64,000 bases of DNA, taken from contig OZ038378.1 in the NCBI GenBank assembly GCA_964036045.1, positions 166,966,001 to 167,030,000 on the forward strand. The letters are read 5' to 3'. A model generated the notes under the pieces. It searched no databases. It was not told where the DNA came from and saw only the letters and a program-made list of their open reading frames with translations. Source of the DNA: Eutreptiella sp. 'Long Island Sound 2002' (Eukaryota; Protista; Euglenida). Below are positions 8,449-64,000 of the stretch, piece after piece; position 1 is the stretch's first letter; each line of letters starts with the position of its first letter. The position numbers and the translations under genes are program-made.

Positions 8449-10582
8449 GACTACCCGTTGTGCCACCCCTTATGACCATCCCATATGCCCACCCCTTATG
8501 GCCACCCCTTATGACCACCTGTTATGACCACCCCTTGCGACCACCCCTTAGAACCACCCCTTATGACCACCCCTTATGACCACCCCTTATGACCACGCCT
8601 TATGACCACCCCATATGACCGCCCCGTATGACCAACCCTTATGATCACCCCTTATGACCACCCGTTTTGACCACCCCTTACAATCACCCCTTATGACCAC
8701 CTCTTATGACCACCCCTTACAACCACCCCTTACGACCAACCCTTACGACCACCCCTTATGACAACCCCTTATAACCACCCCTTACGAACACTCCCTACAA
8801 CCACCCCCTGTGACCACGCTTTATGACCACCCCTTATGACCGTCCCTTATGACAACCCCTTATGACCACCACCTATGCCCACCCCTTATGGCCACCCCTT
8901 AGGACCCTCCCTTATGACCACCCTTTATGACCACCCCTTATGACCACCCGTATTACGGACCTTGGCGTGGCCATGATTCCGCTCGGCCGTACAGTGGATG
9001 GGCAGAAGCAAAAAAAGAGTAGCATGGAATTGTACTTACGCTGAACATGCTCAAAACATTGATTCATTTGTGGTGATGAAAGGGGTGGGCATAGGCGGTG
9101 GCCATAAGGGGTGGTGATAAGGGGTGGTCATAAGGGGTGGTCATAAGGGGTGGTAATAAGGGGTGGTCATAAGGGGTGGTTATAGACGGTGGTCATAAGG
9201 GGTGGTCATAAGGGGTGGTCATAAGGGGTGGTCATAAGGGGTGGTCATAAGGGGTGGTCGTAAGGGGTGGTAACGACTACCCCTTATGACCACCCCTAAT
9301 GACCACCCCTTATCAGCACCCCTTATGATCACCCGTTATGACCACCCCTTACGAGCACCCCTTATGACCATCGCTGATGACCACGCCTTATGAGCACCCT
9401 TTATGACCACCCTTTATGACCACCCGTTGTGACCACCCCTCATGACCACCGCTTGTGACCACCCCTTATGACCAACCCTTATGACCACCCCTTATGACCA
9501 CCCCTAATGACCACCCCTTATGACCGCCCCCTACGACCACCGCTTATGACCACCGCTTGTGACCACCCCTAATGACCACGCCTTATGACCGCCCCTAATG
9601 ACCACCCCTTATGACCACCGCTTGTGACCACCCTTTATGACTACCCCTTAACCACCCCTTATGACCACCGTCTATGACCACCCCTCATGACCACCCATTA
9701 CGACCACCCCTTATGACCACCTCTTATGACCACCCCTTATGATCCCCCCTAATGACCACCCCTTATGACCACCCCTTACGAACACTCCCTACAACCACCC
9801 CCTATGACCACGCTTTATGATCACCCCTTACGACCACCCCTTATGACAACCCCTTATGACCACCACCTATGCCCACCCCTTATGGCCACCCCTTATGGCC
9901 ACCCCTTAGGACCCTCCCTTATGACCACCCCTTATGACCGCCCCCTACGACCACCGCTTATGACCACCGCTTGTGACCACCCCTAATGACCACGCCTTAT
10001 GACCGCCCCTAATGACCACCCCTTATGACCACCGCTTGTGACCACCCTTTATGACTACCCCTTAACCACCCCTTATGACCACCGTCTATGACCACCCCTC
10101 ATGACCACCCATTACGACCACCCCTTATGACCACCTCTTATGACCACCCCTTATGATCCCCCCTAATGACCACCCCTTATGACCACCCCTTACGAACACT
10201 CCCTACAACCACCCCCTATGACCACGCTTTATGATCACCCCTTACGACCACCCCTTATGACAACCCCTTATGACCACCACCTATGCCCACCCCTTATGCC
10301 CACCCCTTATGGCCACCCCTTAGGACCCTCCCTTATGACCACCCCTTATGACCACCCCTTATGACCACCCGTATTACGGACCTTGGCGTGGCCATGATTC
10401 CGCTCGGCCGTACAGTGGATGGGCAGAAGCAAAAAAAGAGTAGCATGGAATTGTACTTACGCTGAACATGCTCAAAACATTGATTCATTTGTGGTGATGA
10501 AAGGGGTGGGCATAGGCGGTGGCCATAAGGGGTGGTGATAAGGGGTGGTCATAAGGGGTGGTCATAAGGGGTGGTCGTAACT
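8449..10582. repeat. Two head-to-tail foldback modules built from a 13-bp repeat (TTATGACCACCCC)n around an identical ~130-bp core
   Basis: Forward array ~8470-8949, core 8950-9079, inverted array ~9080-9270. Forward array 9275-10370 (with a ~414-bp internal duplication), core 10371-10500, inverted array ~10501-10580. Confidence 0.9.
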
Positions 10583-49745: not shown

Positions 49746-49789
49746 TGTGCGACGAAACAAGACCTATTTCAGAAACTACCGAGACAATT

Positions 49790-50320
49790 CTTAAAAATGG
49801 CTGCCTCAATGCGCTCATTGACGCCGTAAACTTTTTTTTTGATAAATTATAGCCGTTTCCGAAAGTTAGCAACTTCACCAGGTTGAGTTTTTGGCATTCA
49901 GCATCCACTATTTGTAGATAAGCTAGGGATCCAATCTGAATGTGCATTCGCAAAGTTAAGGTACCAAATAATACTGTATATAAGCCACATGCTTGAAATC
50001 TAGAGAAATGGCAACAGCAAGTTAATTCTGTGACCGCACAGACGACAAGTATCTGGCTTGATGTTGGCGCGCTATCCAAAACGCTTTCCAAATCGAACGA
50101 CAGCCAAAGGCTTCGGATTTAAGACTCGAAACCTGATTTTCAACGGAAAATTTTCAACGGAAAATAATGGTGCAGAAGCACTTTGTTGTGTTTATTTTGT
50201 TTTACGTATCTTTTAGCACTGATCTTTCATTTCCCGATGCTCAACCGTAGATGCTGCATTTTTGAGGACAAAATAAGAGAATACATAAAAAATTTAATCA
50301 AAATTAACTGTTGATTCATC
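49790..50320 (+). repeat. ~550-bp AT-rich repeat X; a second copy is split by the Mutator-like insertion (50460-50516 + 57005-57510)
   Basis: Shared AAAATGG(C/T)(T/C)GCCTCAATGCG, GAAAGTTAG, TTTGGCATTCAGCATCCACTA, AGATAAGCTAGG in the same order and orientation. Confidence 0.75.
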
Positions 50321-50769
50321 ACCTAGTTCAATTCCCTCCTCATGGGGGGCTCTCCATGTGGGGGTCAGGGAATGGGGACCCGCCCCTTTCTAAAACCTCC
50401 TTTTTGTACCATTTTATACAGAACGCACAACAAAACAAAACATACTTCAAAAATAACCAAGACAAAATGGCCGCCTCAATGCGATGATTAACATGCTAAA
50501 CTTTTTTTTCATAGATGGGTCTGTAGTGAAACCTAGTAAAAAAATTTTTTTTTTAAAAAGTTTTTTTTTTACTAGGTAACAGTTTACTAGGTAACACGTT
50601 TTTTTACTGGGTATTGGGAACCTAGTAAAAAAAAAAACTTTTTTTTTTACTAGGTTTCAAAACCTAGTAAAAAAAAAACTTTTTTTTTACTAGGTTTCCA
50701 AACCTAGTAAAAAAAAAGTTTTTGTTTTTACTAGGTTTCAGAACCTGGTAAACACAAAATTTTTGTACT

Positions 50770-53700
50770 TGTGGGCCACTTCTGATTTTGCCCCCCGCTC
50801 TGAAGCGGAGGGGATCCCCGATACGGCAGGGGTGAGGTAGCCACTTTGCCCACTTGTGGGCCAATTCTGATTTTGCCCCCCGCTCTGCAGCGGTGGGGAT
50901 CCCCGATACGGCAGGGGTGAGGTAGCCAATTTGCCCACTTGTGGGCCACTTCTGATTTTGCCCCCCGCTCTGCAGCGCTGGGGATCCCCGATAAGGCAGG
51001 GGTGAGGTAGCCACTTTGCCCACTTGTGGGCCACTTCTGATTCTGCCCCCCGCTCTGCAGCGCTGGGAATCCCCGATACGGCAGGGGTGAGGTAGCCACT
51101 TTGCCCACTTGTGGGCCACTTCTGATTTTGCCCCCCGCTCTGCAGCGGTGGGGCTCCCCGATACGGCAGGGGTGAGGTAGCCACTTTGCCCACTTGTGGG
51201 CCACTTCTGATTTTGCCCCCCGCTCTGAAACAGTGGGGCTCCCCGATACGGCAGGGGTGAGGTAGCCACTTCGCCCACTTGTGGGCCACTTCTGATTTTG
51301 CCCCCCGCTCTGCAGCGGTGGGGATCCCCGATACGGCAGGGGTGAGGTAGCCACTTTGCCCACTTGTGGGCCACTTCTGATTTTGCCCCCCGCTCTGCAG
51401 CGGTGGGGATCCCCGATACGGCAGGGGTGAGGTAGCCACTTTGCCCACTTGTGGGCCACTTCTGATTTCGCCTCCCGCTCTGCAGCAGCGGTGGGGATCC
51501 CCGATACGGCAGGGGTGAGGTAGCCACTTTGCCCACTTGTGGGCCACTTCTGATTTTGCCCCCCGCTCTGAAGGGGAGGGGATCCCCGATACGGCAGGGG
51601 TGAGGTAGCCAATTTGCCCACTTGTGGGCCACTTCTGATTTTGCTCCCCGCTCTGCAGCGGTGGGGCTCCCCGATACGGCAGGGGTGAGGTAGCCACTTT
51701 GCCCACTTGTGGGCCACTTCTGATTTTGCCCCCCGCTCTGAAGCGGAGGGGATCCCCGATACGGCAGGGGTGAGGTAGCCACTTTGCCCACTTGTGGGCC
51801 ACTTCTGATTTTGCCCCCCGCTCTGAAGCGGAGGGGATCCCCGATACGGCAGGGGTGAGGTAGCCAATTTGCCCACTTGTGGGCCACTTCTGATTTTGCC
51901 CCCCGCTCTGCAGCGGTGGGGATCCCCGATACGGCAGGGGTGAGGTAGCCAATTTGCCCACTTGTGGGCCACTTCTGATTTTGCCCCCCGCTCTGAAGCG
52001 GAGGGGATCCCCGATACGGCAGGGGTGAGGTAGCCAATTTGCCCACTTGTGGGCCACTTCTGATTCTGCCCCCCGCTCTGCAGCGGTGGGGATCCCCGAT
52101 ACGGCAGGGGTGAGGTAGCCAATTTGCCCACTTGTGGGCCACTTCTGATTTTGCCCCCCGCTCTGCAGCGGTGGGGATCCCCGATACGGCAGGGGTGAGG
52201 TAGCCACTTTGCCCACTTGTGGGCCACTTCTGATTCTGCCCCCCGCTCTGCAGCGGTGGGGATCCCCGATACGGCAGGGGTGAGGTAGCCACTTTGCCCA
52301 CTTGTGGGCCACTTCTGATTTTGCCCCCCGCTCTGAAGCAGTGGGGCTCCCCGATACGGCAGGGGTGAGGTAGCCACTTCGCCCACTTGTGGGCCACTTC
52401 TGATTTTGCCCCCCGCTCTGCAGCGCTGGGGCTCCCCGATACGGCAGGGGTGAGGTAGCCACTTTGGCCACTTGTGGGCCACTTCTGATTTTGCCCCCCG
52501 CTCTGCAGCGGTGGGGCTCCCCGATACGGCAGGGGTGAGGTAGCCACTTTGCCCACTTGTGGGCCACTTCTGATTTTGCCCCCCGCTCTGAAGCGGAGGG
52601 GATCCCCGATACGGCAGGGGTGAGGTAGCCACTTTGCCCACTTGTGGGCCACTTCTGATTTTGCCCCCCGCTCTGAAGCGGAGGGGATCCCCGATACGGC
52701 AGGGGTGAGGTAGCCAATTTGCCCACTTGTGGGCCACTTCTGATTTTGCCCCCCGCTCTGAAGCGGAGGGGATCCCCGATACGGCAGGGGTGAGGTAGCC
52801 AATTTGCCCACTTGTGGGCCACTTCTGATTCTGCCCCCTGCTCTGCAGCGGTGGGGATCCCCGATACGGCAGGGGTGAGGTAGCCAATTTGCCCACTTGT
52901 GGGCCACTTCTGATTTTGCCCCCCGCTCTGCAGCGGTGGGGATCCCCGATACGGCAGGGGTGAGGTAGCCAATTTGCCCACTTGTGGGCCACTTCTGATT
53001 TTGCCCCCCGCTCTGCAGCGGTGGGGATCCCCGATACGGCAGGGGTGAGGTAGCCAATTTGCCCACTTGTGGGCCACTTCTGATTTTGCCCCCCGCTCTG
53101 CAGCGGTGGGGATCCCCGATACGGCAGGGGTGAGGTAGCCAATTTGCCCACTTGTGGGCCACTTCTGATTTTGCCCCCCGCTCTGAAGCGGAGGGGATCC
53201 CCGATACGGCAGGGGTGAGGTAGCCAATTTGCCCACTTGTGGGCCACTTCTGATTTTGCCCCCCGCTCTGCAGCGGTGGGGCTCCCCGATACGGCAGGGG
53301 TGAGGTAGCCACTTTGCCCACTTGTGGGCCACTTCTGATTTTGCCCCCCTCTGCAGCGGTGGGGATCCCCGATACGGCAGGGGTGAGGTAGCCACTTTGC
53401 CCACTTGTGGGCCACTTCTGATTTTGCCCCCCGCTCTGAAGCGGAGGGGATCCCCGATACGGCAGGGGTGAGGTAGCCAATTTGCCCACTTGTGGGCCAC
53501 TTCTGATTTTGCCCCCCGCTCTGAAGCGGAGGGGATCCCCGATACGGCAGGGGTGAGGTAGCCAATTTGCCCACTTGTGGGCCACTTCTGATTCTGCCCC
53601 CTGCTCTGCAGCGGTGGGGATCCCCGATACGGCAGGGGTGAGGTAGCCACTTTGCCCACTTGTGGGCCACTTCTGATTTTGCCCCCCGCTCTGAAGCGGA

Positions 53701-54963
53701 GGGGATCCCCGATACGGCAGGGGTGAGGTAGCCAATTTGCCCACTTGTGGGCCACTTCTGATTTTGCCCCCCGCTCTGCAGCGGTGGGGATCCCCGATAC
53801 GGCAGGGGTGAGGTAGCCAATTTGCCCACTTGTGGGCCACTTCTGATTTTGCCCCCCGCTCTGAAGCGGAGGGCATCCCCGATACGGCAGGGGTGAGGTA
53901 GCCACTTTGCCCACTTCTGGGCCACTTCTGATTTTGCCCCCCGCTCTGCAGCGGTGGGGATCCCCGATACGGCAGGGGTGAGGTAGCCAATTTGCCCACT
54001 TGTGGGCCACTTCTGATTTTGCCCCCCGCTCTGCAGCGGTGGGGATCCCCGATACGGCAGGGGTGAGGTAGCCAATTTGCCCACTTGTGGGCCACTTCTG
54101 ATTTTGCCCCCCGCTCTGCAGCGGTGGGGATCCCCGATACGGCAGGGGTGAGGTAGCCACTTTGCCCACTTGTGGGCCACTTCTGATTTTGCCCCCCGCT
54201 CTGAAGCGGAGGGGATCCCCGATACGGCAGGGGTGAGGTAGCCAATTTGCCCACTTGTGGGCCACTTCTGATTTTGCCCCCCGCTCTGAAGCGGAGGGCA
54301 TCCCCGATACGGCAGGGGTGAGGTAGCCACTTTGCCCACTTGTGGGCCACTTCTGATTTTGCCCCCCGCTCTGAAGCGGAGGGGATCCCCGATACGGCAG
54401 GGGTGAGGTAGCCAATTTGCCCACTTGTGGGCCACTTCTGATTTTGCCCCCCGCTCTGAAGCGGAGGGGATCCCCGATACGGCAGGGGTGAGGTAGCCAA
54501 TTTGCCCACTTGTGGGCCACTTCTGATTTTGCCCCCCGCTCTGCAGCGGTGGGGATCCCCGATACGGCAGGGGTGAGGTAGCCAATTTGCCCACTTGTGG
54601 GCCACTTCTGATTTTGCCCCCCGCTCTGCAGCGGTGGGGATCCCCGATACGGCAGGGGTGAGGTAGCCACTTTGCCCACTTGTGGGCCACTTCTGATTTT
54701 GCCCCCCGCTCTGAAGCGGAGGGCATCCCCGATACGGCAGGGGTGAGGTAGCCACTTTGCCCACTTGTGGGCCACTTCTGATTTTGCCCCCCGCTCTGAA
54801 GCGGAGGGGATCCCCGATACGGCAGGGGTGAGGTAGCCAATTTGCCCACTTGTGGGCCACTTCTGATTTTGCCCCCCGCTCTGCAGCGGTGGGGATCCCC
54901 GATACGGCAGGGGTGAGGTAGCCAATTTGCCCACTTGTGGGCCACTTCTGATTTTGCCCCCCT
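50770..54963. repeat. 85-bp tandem satellite, about 49 copies
   Basis: Unit GTGGGCCACTTCTGATTTTGCCCCCCGCTCTG(C/A)AGCGG(T/A)GGGGATCCCCGATACGGCAGGGGTGAGGTAGCCA(A/C)TTTGCCCACTT; 85-aa periodicity in all three minus frames. Confidence 0.97.
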
Positions 54964-56519
54964 CCACACACCCGGATGGTGACAGCAGCCTCCCCGCAAT
55001 TACCCCCGCAAATGCGTCTCCTACCAGCCCGCCTCTAGCCATGGAGGAATTTGCCGACCATCCCAATGCTGGGACGGAGACTGTCCCCCCACCCCCATGC
55101 TCTAATACCACCCCGCTGTCACAGACGGGAATGGTTATTACGAGGCCTGTTTGTGGACATGACGTCTTGGCCGCAGTGTGCCATGCCCTGACCAATGGCC
55201 CAGGCGGCCCTACTGCCCAATTGCAGCATGTTGAGTCATTGCTCCATGACGAATGGGAACGACCACTTGACGTGATCATTCCAAGTTCTGGGTCTCAACA
55301 ATATAAGCTAGAGGCACGCCATTTGAGGGATGTTTACTCAGAATCTTACGTCACAGATACCGCCGAGATTGTTTTGTATTACTGGTGGTCCGCTCGGACA
55401 GCTTTGAGTGCGGACTGGGATGTTATGGGTGTGGCGTGGGTTGTGCGTGACTCATTGTGGAATGTGTCGGCTTTACCGTTGGGTCGTAGGGAGGTGTTGG
55501 CTGAGTCATGGGCGCGGCGTACTTTGAACGCGGCGTCCATTGATATGATCTATGCGCCCCCCTTGCTCGTGGCGCAGATTTATAATAAGCGCAATGCACA
55601 TTGGGTGCTGCGCTTGTTGTTGGTTTCCCCAACACGTACTTTCTTGTGCCTCGTGTTCGATCCGCTGTGTTACAAGCCGTACATAGCGGGTGCAAACACC
55701 GAGGAGTTGGCAATAGTGAACCTCATTGCCGAACAAGAAGGCATTAAGGCAAGGGCGCTGAAGAGGTGGGACAAGTTTTTGGGTGAGTTCGGCAGTGTAG
55801 CTTTTGCTATAGCCCCCCTCTACTCCACCTTCCTACATCAGGACGACGGTGTGAGCTGCCATCCTGCCTGCCTTATGATGCTACATTGCCTTTTGTCTAG
55901 GCGTGTTGTCAACGGTAGCATCCAACTTCCACAAGACAGATTGTGGTTGTTGCGTGAGATTGCACAGGCAGCTTTGCACTATCGCAGTTCTCCGCCTGCC
56001 CCCCCTATTGAGACCACACCCAGTTGGGCCTTGGCACGGATGTATGCTACGCCCTATTGTTCACCCAGCCGTTCGTCGTGCTTTTTTTGCGACGACACAG
56101 CCCACATCACGTGCCCTGAATGTGGAGTTTATCAGTGTGCCCTGCATGCTTCCGGTTTCTGTTCCACAGAGATATGTGTGGCATTGCGCAAATGGAATGT
56201 GCAATTTACTGCCACACTGGCATGCATTGTGTTGGCATTCGCCTTGGGTGACCGGCTTGTGGTTGACAAGCCGCCTTCTGTAGATGAGGTCCGTCCAAAG
56301 GTGGTGATCCGTGGTGAAGAATTTTTTGTTCCAGAGCATTACCCCAAAGATGCCTATGGGAGATTGGAGTATGACAAAAATCTAATCAAAGAGTTGGAAG
56401 AAAAGACCACGGGCGTGATTCACAACATGTGCAAGCACAACCCTCCCTCTGCACAACCCACCTACAAAGACAAGAAGTCGGACCTCATCTACAAGCGCGT
56501 GTTTTGCGACTTCATATAA
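54927..56519 (+). CDS. Ulp1/SENP-like cysteine protease (peptidase C48-like) with C-terminal Cys/His zinc cluster; first ATG at 55041
   Basis: Triad in C48 order: NAHWVL (His), VFDPL (Asp), HQDDGVSCH (oxyanion Gln + Cys). Then CFFC..CPEC..CALH..C..C. Single uninterrupted exon. Confidence 0.75.
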   Translation: MPTCGPLLILPPSTHPDGDSSLPAITPANASPTSPPLAMEEFADHPNAGTETVPPPPCSNTTPLSQTGMVITRPVCGHDVLAAVCHALTNGPGGPTAQLQHVESLLHDEWERPLDVIIPSSGSQQYKLEARHLRDVYSESYVTDTAEIVLYYWWSARTALSADWDVMGVAWVVRDSLWNVSALPLGRREVLAESWARRTLNAASIDMIYAPPLLVAQIYNKRNAHWVLRLLLVSPTRTFLCLVFDPLCYKPYIAGANTEELAIVNLIAEQEGIKARALKRWDKFLGEFGSVAFAIAPLYSTFLHQDDGVSCHPACLMMLHCLLSRRVVNGSIQLPQDRLWLLREIAQAALHYRSSPPAPPIETTPSWALARMYATPYCSPSRSSCFFCDDTAHITCPECGVYQCALHASGFCSTEICVALRKWNVQFTATLACIVLAFALGDRLVVDKPPSVDEVRPKVVIRGEEFFVPEHYPKDAYGRLEYDKNLIKELEEKTTGVIHNMCKHNPPSAQPTYKDKKSDLIYKRVFCDFI

Positions 56520-57789
56520 AGCACGCGTGTGTGCACCTCATATATGTATATATATATTTATCATATAAAAGCTCCTTCTTTTCTTGAGCCTCATTTTGTT
56601 TTTGCTGACCTTGCAATACACGGTTTGGCCCGGGTGGGGCGCCACTTACACAAGTGGCCTGGAATAGACCAGGGGGCACCATGCCCTTAAACATAAATAC
56701 CACCTACCGTTGACCCCCCCCCCCCCCATAAACTTGGTTTTTTTTGTTCAAATTCAAGTCCAAATTTGTCACTACCTAGTAACCTAGTAAGGGAAAATTT
56801 TTTAAATTTTTTGCTTTTTTTACCTGGTAAAAAAAATTTTTTTTAAATTTTTTTTTAAAATTTTTGCTTTTTTTACCTAGTAAAAAAAATAAATTTTTAA
56901 AAAAAAATTTTTTACTAGGTTTTGCTACATTTTACTAGGTTTTGCTACATTTTACTAGGTTTTGCTACGTGCATACTAGGTTTCACCAAATGCCCTTCAT
57001 AGATTCTACCCGTTTTGGAAAGTTAGTAGCCTCACAAGATTGACTATTTGGCATTCAGCATCCACTAATTTTAGATAAGCTAGGCATGGCCGGGATCTGA
57101 AGGTGCACCAGCAAAGTTTAGGTCCCAAATAACACTATATACAAGCCATATGCCCGAAATCCAAGAAATTGTGATCGGAAAGTAGTTCTTTGACAGCACA
57201 GGCGACAGCAATCTGGGCTCGCTCTCCAAAAGGGCTGTCCAAATCCCAAATTAGCTACAAGCCACGAAATTTTGATCCGAGACCTGATTTATAAATGATT
57301 TTTTTTTGGGAAAATAATGCAGCTGAAGCGCTTTTTTGCATCAATAAATGTGTTTTTAGGAAAAATAATGCAGCTGAAGCGCTTTATTCGCATTACTTTC
57401 ATTTTTTCTATTTTGAAGTACTGATGTTTCATTTTTCAACGCTAAGTGTTCAACGACACATTTTTGACGTCAAAAAGTGAAAATGCATAAAAAATTAATC
57501 AAAATGAGCTTTTGGTTCTTCAAAATCAGACATATACGGCCCAATGTATGAATTTTTCAGGTTGTGGTGTATTGACGCTGTGTAGGTCATTTTGCTCAAT
57601 CCACCCACCTTTCTTCGGTAAGGTGGATGGGATACGAGTTATCGAGCAAATATTTGCATTGTCCTTGCTTAAGGGCAGTGCGCGGGGTGCCGCGCCACTG
57701 TCATCCCAAGAGTAAAGACTCTCAGGCGCTATGGTGACGCAACTGAGTTAACTGGAGGGCATTGACGTGACTGAGTCGCCAGAATTGTG

Positions 57790-62100: not shown

Positions 62101-64000
62101 CAGCATCGGCCTCGAGGGGTCCTTGTGGATTCTCTCCTCTGCAGTCCTGCGTGGTGGGCAGTTGCTTCCTGTGGTCTCCAGCTCTGAAATTATTTGTCTG
62201 GAAAAATTCTGTCCCAGGGTTTTTGGCAAAGCGCAAGGAGGGGTAAAGAGATGGGGAGGTCGTGGATGCCGCAAGAGGGTGGGCTGAGGAAGGGGAATCT
62301 TAAGGGGCATGGATTTTGTTTCTATTTAGAGAGAAAGCTGAGAGATATTAGCAAACCACAGCATCTATTCTCTTGGCATCATTAGTCATTGAACAGTGTT
62401 GGTAACTGTGTGCACCTGAGCACAATGGGACCCTTATCACACCTGTTTCTTGAGAGTAAGGACCTCTGCAGTCAAGAGAGCTGGCTTTGAGTCTTCTTAC
62501 GAGGGGCAAGGGAAAATGTGACAAACTTCTTTGTACTACATTGCAAAGGATTGTAGAACAACTTTCCTGGGCATATTTTTCTTGACACGTTGTTGCCCCA
62601 AATCTGCCCCCCAACGACAACATGTGTTACCATATCAGAAATATTGGGGGGGAGTGGATAAATATTCTGTTGTAAGTCCACGCCTTTCAGTTGTGCACCA
62701 CTCCCCATTTTCACATGGAATTTGTACCTCTCTTTCTCACTCAAATACCATGGAGCACCTTCGTGAGTGTTGCCCTTTGCTAAGGAGATGCTCTTTTGAG
62801 TTGAGACAAAAACAGTGGACCTCGAATTCAGCAATTTATTGATTCGTATGATTGTTGTTGCTCTTGTTTGGAAAGGCTGGCAACAATGAGTCTCCAATTG
62901 GGGATGATACCCCCACCGACGGTGGTGACTGGATAGTAGGCATCCCGGGTCCAACCCTACGCCCAGATGCTGAGGACCGGTTGCACCGGCAGACTTTTGA
63001 TAGGTTTCCCAGACATAGACAAAATGTTCAACCGTTTGACCAATCTCCTCCACCCCATTCCCTCAATTGTTCCTAGTTTTCCCAGTACCCCCCTAGTTCC
63101 CCCCAGTTGCCCCCCATTTTCCCCCATGCCACCCCCCCCCCCCCAACTCCCCCCAGTTCCCCCCACCCCTATTCCCCCATTTTTCGAGGTCTCATGGGGA
63201 GCGTTAGCACGCCGGGCATCTTTTTTGACCCGTGCCCCACCGGTGACCTTTTAGGGGGTGCACTAAGCGCAGTGCGCGCGCATTGCAACTATTTGGACGT
63301 CTAGCCGTCCTAGAACCCCATACTTTGTGATACTATGGGCATTATTGTTGTTTGACAACAGGTATTTTGATGCTTCTTTCACACTCGGTATATGGTATAT
63401 TTGGATTCTCACCCAGTTTCACCGATTTTCTTCCATTTTTTGCTCGTTTCCACCACATCCACTCCTTACTAGGTTGATTTCTCCCCACCATGGGGACCCC
63501 GAGAAGGCAGGGGTGATGTAGTGAATGCTGAGTTTGCGCTTCGTTCTTGTCACGTGAGGCAGAAACGCCGTCCAAACCGCTTGCGGCTTGGGGGCTCATT
63601 GCTATAGCGAGGTTTATGGGAAAGGTAAAGGCAAAGTACCGTTTGTTAAGTACAATACAAATGACATTTGGAGTTGTTGAATTCACAGCTATTGCCTAAT
63701 TATGCAACGTGCTTTGTAGGCGCAGTCCATCATGGTCTATTTGGGGGGCCTTCTCCATCAGAGGGTATATCTGGGGCTGAAGTTGGGATAGTTAATAGAA
63801 AGGTAGCGCACCGGGCAAACATTCCCCCCATGTACATCATGGGTGCGTTGCTGAGTGTCTTACCTGCCACGTGGTCTGGGTACTTTGCAAGACACAGAGT
63901 CAAAAGAAAAAACATGTTGTTGGGGAGGGCGACTCCTTTTTGAATGGGGTGAACTCCCATTCACTCTCAATCATGATTTCAGAATGCTGCATCTCGCATG

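Follow-up and report, generated by a model that had tools for sequence, protein, structure and literature searches.

A probable deletion derivative of a high-copy Mutator-like transposon in a euglenid genome, with a satellite array and a putative Ulp1-like domain

The window analysed here is a 64-kb stretch of contig OZ038378.1 from the euglenid Eutreptiella sp. 'Long Island Sound 2002'. Towards its right-hand end, at positions 50517–56995, lies an element of 6,479 bp that combines short inverted termini, a 4.2-kb satellite array and an uninterrupted open reading frame (ORF) of 492 codons. A preliminary reading made from the letters of the window only (the sequence-only reading) took this for a Mutator- or foldback-like element that carries an Ulp1-type protease and a satellite as cargo. 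Has an element of this kind captured a protease, or is the ORF what remains of something larger? Full-length copies of the same family, and its sister families, encode a transposase that ends in the same C-terminal domain as the window ORF, and the window element is therefore to be seen as a deleted Mutator-like element (MULE) and not as one with captured cargo: most probably it is a non-autonomous copy, with a 5'/internal deletion, of a young, high-copy MULE transposon.

The limits of the element are marked by an exact 9-bp target-site duplication, TTCATAGAT, for which the chance of identity at two fixed positions is approximately 4e-6. Immediately inside the two copies of the duplication are the termini, GGGTCTGTAGTGAAACCTAGTA on the left and, as its reverse complement, GGGCATTTGGTGAAACCTAGTA on the right, which form imperfect 22-bp GGG...CCC inverted repeats that agree at 16 of 22 positions. 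Both ends are rich in the 9-mer ACCTAGTAA. Counting both strands, this motif occurs 16 times in the window against a chance expectation of 0.09, with 15 of the 16 copies in 50531–50736 and 56774–56960, no further than about 250 bp from the ends of the element, where they make up inverted pairs able to form hairpins. Those of the left subterminal region are presumed transposase-binding sites. Evidence for a discrete insertion event comes from an empty-site test. When the flanks are joined, minus one copy of the duplication, they align across the junction to window positions 49752–50188 (72% identity over 442 bp, E = 5e-61), indicating that the element interrupts a copy of a local repeat. The termini, the duplication, the palindromic arrays and the restoration of a contiguous repeat upon excision had all been described in the sequence-only reading, and all were found as described.

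To place the element in its genomic context, we searched the 2.28-Gb assembly, pairing each k-mer count with that of a control pattern, which gave 0 matches in every case reported here. The left terminus 22-mer has 642 copies and the right terminus 22-mer 755 (up to one mismatch), whilst 24-mers from the protease region and from the DDE region of the transposase described below have 232 and 23 copies, respectively (up to two mismatches). By these counts, about one third of copies keep the protease segment and about 3% the DDE core, with most keeping neither. A protein search of the genome gave more than 5000 first-look candidates and 88 scored copies, spread over all large contigs. The distance of the ORF from the right terminus is always approximately 480 bp, the terminus itself is the same throughout, and the enclosing duplications differ in sequence. 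Perfect 9-bp duplications of unrelated sequence flank four of the five long copies that were fetched. A further 20 copies, ranging from 485 bp to 6.4 kb, were obtained by pairing left and right termini from the two match lists, only the flanks being compared; 16 of these have a perfect 9-bp duplication, three have one with 1–2 mismatches and one has a duplication of 8 bp. With the window copy included, perfect 9-bp duplications are present in 21 of 26 copies, with no target consensus, in keeping with the earlier description of a Mutator-like element with duplications of this length. The window family is a recently active, young, high-copy cut-and-paste transposon.

Autonomous partners with a MULE transposase, whose existence the sequence-only reading had raised, emerged from the genome search of the family as full-length copies of 8.5–8.7 kb and as intact ORFs in sister families. 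Within the window family itself, locus L040 (C5:133150800-133158900, minus strand) has a frame of 1081 amino acids that is followed, after one frameshift in the protease region, by the last 243 amino acids; L033 has an N-truncated frame of 1117 amino acids, and L036 has one frameshift. A fourth copy, L031, spans 8,748 bp between perfect duplications and has a reverse-transcriptase-bearing element nested in its DDE region. Three sister families (L047–L049), whose N-terminal transposase parts are approximately 61% and 35% identical to that of the window family, possess uninterrupted ORFs of 1425, 1366 and 1246 amino acids, in which the parts follow one another as in the window family and the C-terminal tail is shared. 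The partner protein is thus a single polypeptide of 1,250–1,425 amino acids with a MULE DDE core, a SWIM-like finger and the same C-terminal domain. The window ORF corresponds, in collinear fashion, to the final ~490 residues of both the L033 ORF and the L031 open frame (1072 amino acids). Upstream of the part equivalent to its 492 residues, the longer proteins have a Cys/His-rich N-terminal region, the DDE core, a SWIM-like C-x-C...C, a lysine-rich stretch and a Cys-rich finger. The protease of the sequence-only reading is accordingly not cargo: as L040, L033 and L047–L049 make clear, the family itself encodes it as the C-terminal part of its transposase polyprotein. Within the window element, Pfam finds no MULE or DDE match, and the earlier statement that this copy has no transposase stands.

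Two side observations concern these partner loci. The L031 insertion (L031:4245-6059; G000:C12:43974744-43976558) contains a reverse-transcriptase-like ORF with an F-I-D-D motif and is flanked by a 117-bp duplication of transposase sequence, far longer than an ordinary target-site duplication. In L047, the right terminus (L047:5889-5910, TACTCAGTTTTACCAAATACCC) differs from that of the window family at four of 22 positions, and the ACCTAGTAAAA motif is not found in L047; the sister families probably recognise different ends.

Evidence for the superfamily assignment comes both from the protein and from the ends. In L040, L033 and L047–L049, the DDE core has one Asp in a DGTG context and a second in SDG, with C-x2-H approximately 22 residues further on, and the third DDE residue is a conserved Glu in a P[AS]E motif approximately 105 residues past the second Asp. 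A C/D-x2-H motif after the second Asp is reportedly a mark of MULE DDE transposases. MULE is the sole Pfam family matched by the partner cores (PF10551; L049, E = 9.4e-5, 23.2 bits, profile positions 3–99 of 99; L047, E = 1.6e-4, 22.4 bits; L031, E = 0.034, 15 bits), every one of these scores being under the gathering threshold of 27.6 bits. In the ESM Atlas, the neighbours of the L049 transposase core are MULE/SWIM clusters at 0.94. As for the ends, MULEs have 8–11-bp duplications, typically of 9 bp, which the duplications of the window family fit, and termini of 20–40 bp in several groups; 22 bp is short for a MULE, yet inside the range given in Table 1 of PMC6446971. On this basis we have filed the family under the Mutator/MULE superfamily.

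What is the C-terminal domain? Sequence comparison suggests that it is probably a diverged CE-clan (Ulp1/C48-like) protease domain. In the window ORF, His187 is followed after 20 residues by Asp207, after a further 60 by Gln267 and after six more by Cys273, an Ulp1-like order and spacing in which the Gln-to-Cys gap equals that of Ulp1 itself. Window-type and L048-type families, otherwise only 15–20% identical in this domain, agree in the four motif columns (alignments of five and 55 sequences), and each of these columns falls on its counterpart (H, D, Q or C) in 11 verified C48 domains. In the ESM Atlas, 29 of the 30 closest clusters that bear a name are PF02902, at 0.92–0.93. With hhalign, a joint profile of the window and sister types aligns along 135 columns with these 11 C48 domains, all verified by Pfam, and brings the four residues into register (probability 68%, P = 4.7e-5), a match that appeared after the C48 alignment had been enlarged to 11 sequences, there being none with an alignment of four. 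The sister-type profile on its own gives P = 3.3e-4 against C48, whilst reversed and 30 column-shuffled profiles score 7–15 against the 41.6 of the real one. A hidden Markov model built from sister-type and canonical C48 sequences, with the window type left out, scores the window domain at 7.6 bits, in register and above all 2000 composition-matched shuffles.

Structure prediction was also used. A first AlphaFold run on all 492 residues was unusable, with a mean predicted local distance difference test score (pLDDT) of 43. A second run reached 57, with only the central sheet at 76–83; in this model the His opens a strand, the Asp follows the end of the next strand and the Cys stands just before a helix. 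In a Foldseek search of 350,542 chains, CE-clan proteases (XopD, SseL and Ulp1) make up six of the top ten rows, at E = 0.2–0.6. Other searches returned little: the profile of alignment A1 gave a chance CxxC match only among PDB sequences, a word-index protein search found only unnamed ENA proteins (most likely from the same or a sister assembly), an exhaustive profile search found 266 relatives, with no Pfam family in the ten that were scanned, and a C48 seed search from a Euglena Ulp1-like domain yielded three proteins only. Downstream of the domain is a Cys/His cluster that has a Pfam zf-HIT match at E = 0.32 only and is absent from the L048/L049-type families, and beyond this a tail that is kept even between types only ~35% identical in the N-terminal transposase part. 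The protease and zinc cluster described from the window thus stand in part, as a most likely diverged Ulp1/C48-type domain followed by a Cys/His cluster; a Pfam match to C48 is lacking.

C48 domains that Pfam does detect are found elsewhere in the genome. Loci L051 and L053 (G000:C1:197531500-197538500; C23:21697500-21703500), together with at least six more, contain another repeated ORF of ~1,180 amino acids in which an N-terminal, Pfam-detectable C48 domain (31 bits) precedes a long region rich in Ala, Thr and Pro and a C-terminal half that is conserved but of no named family. This ORF may represent a second protease-bearing mobile element.

If the domain belongs to the transposase, how strongly is it maintained? 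Between L033 and L047 the protease-like domain has 67% amino acid identity and a non-synonymous divergence (dN) of 0.24, close to the values for the DDE core (65%, 0.27) and for the segment from the DDE core to the SWIM finger (69%, 0.21); the linkers have 22–30% and 0.7–1.3. For the C-terminal ORF, the pairwise ratio of non-synonymous to synonymous divergence (dN/dS) is 0.40 against a 77%-identical subfamily and approximately 0.27 against L047, where dS is saturated. Since identity and dN match those of the DDE core and dN/dS drops between subfamilies, the protease-like domain is, by these measures, under purifying selection comparable to that on the DDE core in active lineages. Among 29 young copies with a mean identity of 98.4%, singletons give a dN/dS of 0.62 and shared variants one of 0.88, values close to neutral decay. 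In other copies, satellite or 5' leader sequence is joined to differing points of the same ORF; these are independent internal deletions.

The second component to be explained is the satellite. In the window it is a direct tandem repeat, present at one end of the element only, between the left motif region and the ORF. A 24-mer from the satellite unit has 86,869 matches in the genome (up to one mismatch), for a total of approximately 7.4 Mb. Long copies of the window family have the satellite between the left subterminal region and the gene; in L050, an L048-type copy, it precedes the ORF and keeps the same relative orientation, and at C1:14171073-14174239 it adjoins a copy of the 61%-identity family (C1:14169378). 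Near-identical satellite sequence is therefore shared, at the same 5' position and in the same orientation, by three MULE families whose N-terminal transposase parts have drifted to 35–61% identity. Because the same placement recurs in the window family and in two sister families, the 85-bp array belongs to the regular internal make-up of this MULE clade and was not picked up by the window copy. The earlier notion of a satellite vector is thus upheld only by half, and not in the sense of an array acquired by this copy; the presence of the array and its length of 4.2 kb were as first reported. It is improbable, though conceivable, that the satellite is a conserved working part of the MULE (a binding-site array, promoter or chromatin-organising module) and that protease-only derivatives are trans-acting helpers supplying a SUMO/ubiquitin-like protease.

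On the minus strand of the array (50767–54962), all three frames are open for 1,422–1,513 codons because the 85-bp unit has no stop codons on that strand, and such frames could mislead gene callers.

Table 1. Features of the element and of its insertion site, in window coordinates
Feature	Position	Strand	Basis or remark
Neighbouring uninterrupted copy of the local repeat hit by the insertion	49752..50188	+	Joined-flank alignment, 72% over 442 bp
Left target-site duplication copy, TTCATAGAT	50508..50516		Identical to 56996-57004
Left terminal inverted repeat, 22 bp, GGG start	50517..50538	+	16/22 match to reverse complement of right end
Left subterminal region, 9x ACCTAGTAA in both orientations	50517..50766		A/T-rich palindromes, period ~41 bp
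85-bp satellite, 49.4 units, 96% matches; three short palindromes per unit	50767..54962	+	Tandem-repeat scan
Open frame left by 5' deletion, first Met 55041, 492 amino acids	54927..56519	+	No stop; C-terminal third of family transposase polyprotein
Probable CE-clan (Ulp1/C48-like) cysteine-protease domain	55257..55997	+	Conserved motif columns, ESM Atlas neighbours, hhalign
Candidate catalytic codons	His 55599-55601, Asp 55659-55661, Gln 55839-55841, Cys 55857-55859	+	Motif columns
Cys/His cluster C-x2-C-x7-C-x2-C-x4-C-x2-H-x4-C, HIT/MYND-like	56079..56177	+	Pattern conserved in alignment A1
Conserved C-terminal tail, end ...DLIYKRVFCDFI	56319..56516	+	Common to all four family types
Right subterminal region, 6x ACCTAGTAA including three 20-bp tandem units	56761..56995		Repeat and motif scan
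Right terminal inverted repeat, 22 bp, CCC end	56974..56995	-	16/22 match to left end
Right target-site duplication copy, TTCATAGAT	56996..57004		Identical to 50508-50516

How, then, might the window copy have arisen? A full-length element comprises, from the left, the 22-bp terminus, approximately 250 bp of ACCTAGTAA motifs, the 85-bp satellite and one long gene, with motif repeats and the right terminus downstream of the gene. The first part of the predicted gene product would consist of an N-terminal DNA-binding region, the MULE DDE core with its C-x2-H, the SWIM-like finger, a basic stretch resembling a nuclear-localisation signal and a Cys-rich finger, and the second part of the diverged Ulp1/C48-like domain, a HIT-like zinc cluster and the conserved tail. 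The deletion that shaped the window copy appears to begin, on its left side, within the satellite and to have taken away everything up to 38 codons before an internal Met, leaving the last 492 codons open. With both of its ends intact, this copy could be mobilised by transposase from one of the ~23 DDE-bearing copies, and a 9-bp staggered cut in the target gives the duplication that flanks it. The protease-like domain, which between families is as conserved as the DDE core, would be a functional part of the autonomous protein and probably strips SUMO or a ubiquitin-like modifier from transposase, chromatin or repair factors at the site of transposition, a role proposed because analogous Ulp1 domains sit in other Mutator and Ginger1 transposases. 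Survival of the domain in the window copy is most simply seen as a by-product of the position of the deletion.

Could the element, or its ORF, be something else altogether? That the ORF is a single- or low-copy host gene lying between unrelated repeats has practically no chance of being correct: no point in its support was found, and it is refuted by the copy number (88 scored copies and 232 24-mer copies) and by the constant linkage of the ORF to the same right terminus, ~480 bp away, within varied duplications. Membership of another superfamily with 8–9-bp duplications is very unlikely, although the termini are short, imperfect and unlike the long termini of maize MuDR, and the subterminal palindromes recall both Foldback and hAT elements. 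The hAT, P and Merlin superfamilies are rejected since the partner transposases match MULE alone in Pfam and MULE/SWIM clusters alone in the ESM Atlas, and have both C-x2-H after the second Asp and a SWIM-like finger. Foldback elements have very long modular inverted terminal repeats that form most of the element. Here, the inverted termini extend over 22 bp, the motifs are confined to regions of ~250 bp and the 4.2-kb array is a direct tandem repeat at one end, and Foldback is likewise rejected; what remains of the foldback-like description in the sequence-only reading is the palindromic subterminal motifs. Nor is terminus length at odds with a MULE, termini of 20–40 bp being recorded for several MULE groups (PMC6446971, Table 1).

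Several further points weigh against a deleted MULE whose transposase ends in a CE-clan protease domain, in addition to the sub-threshold PF10551 scores. The copies of the exact window family that were examined (L040, L031, L036 and L033) are all defective, L040 having an in-frame stop upstream as well as its frameshift. Dozens of protease-only copies have open frames and may thus have a selected role, though the list in which they appear is ranked by protein score and so favours unbroken frames. At E up to 10, Pfam PF02902 matches neither the window ORF nor its domain slice, nor the three sister ORFs, nor ten database relatives; a six-frame scan of the genome with PF02902 recovers Ulp1-like genes of canonical type and a further repeat family, yet not one of these loci, and the window-type profile alone matches neither the sister-type domain nor C48. 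The want of a Pfam C48 match in any member and the empty result with the window-type profile would fit a lineage-specific domain of another fold, in which the His/Asp/Gln/Cys pattern is coincidental or a dead remnant. We consider this unlikely given the in-register hhalign match to verified C48 domains, far above the reversed and shuffled controls, ESM neighbours that are nearly all PF02902, the CE-clan share of the top Foldseek rows, the modelled secondary-structure places of His, Asp and Cys, and the conservation of the four residues across families only 15–20% identical in the domain. Ulp1 domains are, moreover, known at the same position in other Mutator and Ginger1 transposases (PMC2836005). 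Rather more doubtful is the proposal that transposase-less copies actively retain the protease for the benefit of the element, for instance as an anti-silencing deSUMOylase, and also spread the satellite. Protease-segment copies are ten times as numerous as DDE-segment copies (232 versus 23), dozens of copies at 94–99% identity are free of stops and frameshifts, dN/dS from singleton substitutions is ~0.62 with two stop-gains among 159, and the satellite, with its 86,869 units and ~7.4 Mb, has a constant position in three MULE families. However, roughly two in every three termini come from copies that lack the protease segment, derivatives of 0.5–2 kb among them, shared variants give dN/dS of 0.88 and the ranking of copies by protein score favours intact frames. 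The protease lies 0.5–2 kb from the right end and the DDE core mid-element, so that random internal deletions sparing both ends would produce the same excess of protease over DDE without selection. With 232 protease-segment copies set against 642–755 termini, and the 10:1 ratio to DDE copies fitting the position near the right end, the claim that the family keeps its protease is not upheld; the anti-silencing role is likewise unsupported.

Two other repeats in the window may be mentioned here. At 63466–63530, a lone TTACTAGGT motif is followed by ~40 bp resembling part of the 85-bp satellite unit, which gives it the appearance of a decayed piece of some related element. Window positions 8463–10580 are occupied by long arrays of a 13-bp repeat, CCACCCCTTATGA, in both orientations, with ~140 units and a higher-order period of 414 bp.

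Comparison with known systems shows that this is a new euglenid MULE family of a kind of element that is already known. Mutator elements with an Ulp1 domain have been reported from Arabidopsis, maize, rice, melon, hydra and lancelet (PMC2836005), the plant examples including the KI-MULEs and CUMULE (Hoen 2006 and van Leeuwen 2007, as listed in PMC2836005). The window family resembles these in its 9-bp duplications and inverted termini, in combining a MULE DDE core and a SWIM-type finger with a probable CE-clan protease-like domain, and in its numerous non-autonomous copies derived by deletion. It differs from them in its euglenid host, in a protease-like domain that is fused C-terminally in one long intronless ORF and is so diverged that PF02902 misses it, in termini of only 22 bp and in the long 85-bp satellite between the left end and the gene. 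Ginger1 transposases also have a C-terminal Ulp1 or OTU domain fused to the transposase in a single protein, with a role in transposition or repair having been proposed (Bao, Kapitonov and Jurka 2010; PMC2836005), but combine a Gypsy-integrase-like DDE with 4-bp duplications where the window family has a MULE core and 9 bp.

For the satellite, the closest likeness is to the Rehavkus group of Repbase, described in PMC6446971 as bearing a PHD finger and a minisatellite that precedes the 3' terminus, and as occurring in arthropods and annelids. Rehavkus and the window family share the 9-bp duplication, a Mutator-related transposase and a minisatellite as a regular feature beside one terminus. Assignment to Rehavkus itself is rejected, however, as in the window family the array stands between the 5' terminus and the ORF, none of the ORFs has a PHD finger by Pfam, and the host is a euglenid. 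Among protists, the TvMULEs of Trichomonas vaginalis have termini of 20–38 bp, 9–11-bp duplications and one ORF (PMC2725143) and resemble the window family, by description only, as protist MULEs with short termini and a single ORF; unlike the window family, they have no protease domain or satellite recorded in Table 1 of PMC6446971. Our literature search found no report coupling Euglena with MULEs, and in the Euglena gracilis assembly 32.7% of repeat elements are unclassified (PMC11252322).

One further observation bears on the repeats of this genome. A 24-nt spliced-leader sequence of Euglena gracilis has 5,458 matches, dispersed over the chromosomes and on both strands. These seem too many and too scattered for arrays of SL-RNA (spliced-leader RNA) genes alone and may represent retroposed trans-spliced mRNAs or dispersed SL-RNA genes.

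For euglenid genome annotation, the window family offers a clean, recently active DNA transposon with defined ends, known copy numbers and both autonomous-type and deleted forms, and it provides a source for approximately 7 Mb of 85-bp satellite. It also carries a warning, as transposase remnants account for hundreds of 'orphan' ORFs in this genome. More broadly, it adds a euglenid case to the recurring and as yet unexplained link of cut-and-paste transposases with Ulp1/OTU-type proteases, and the finding that the domain appears to be as constrained as the DDE core argues that it may be needed for transposition.

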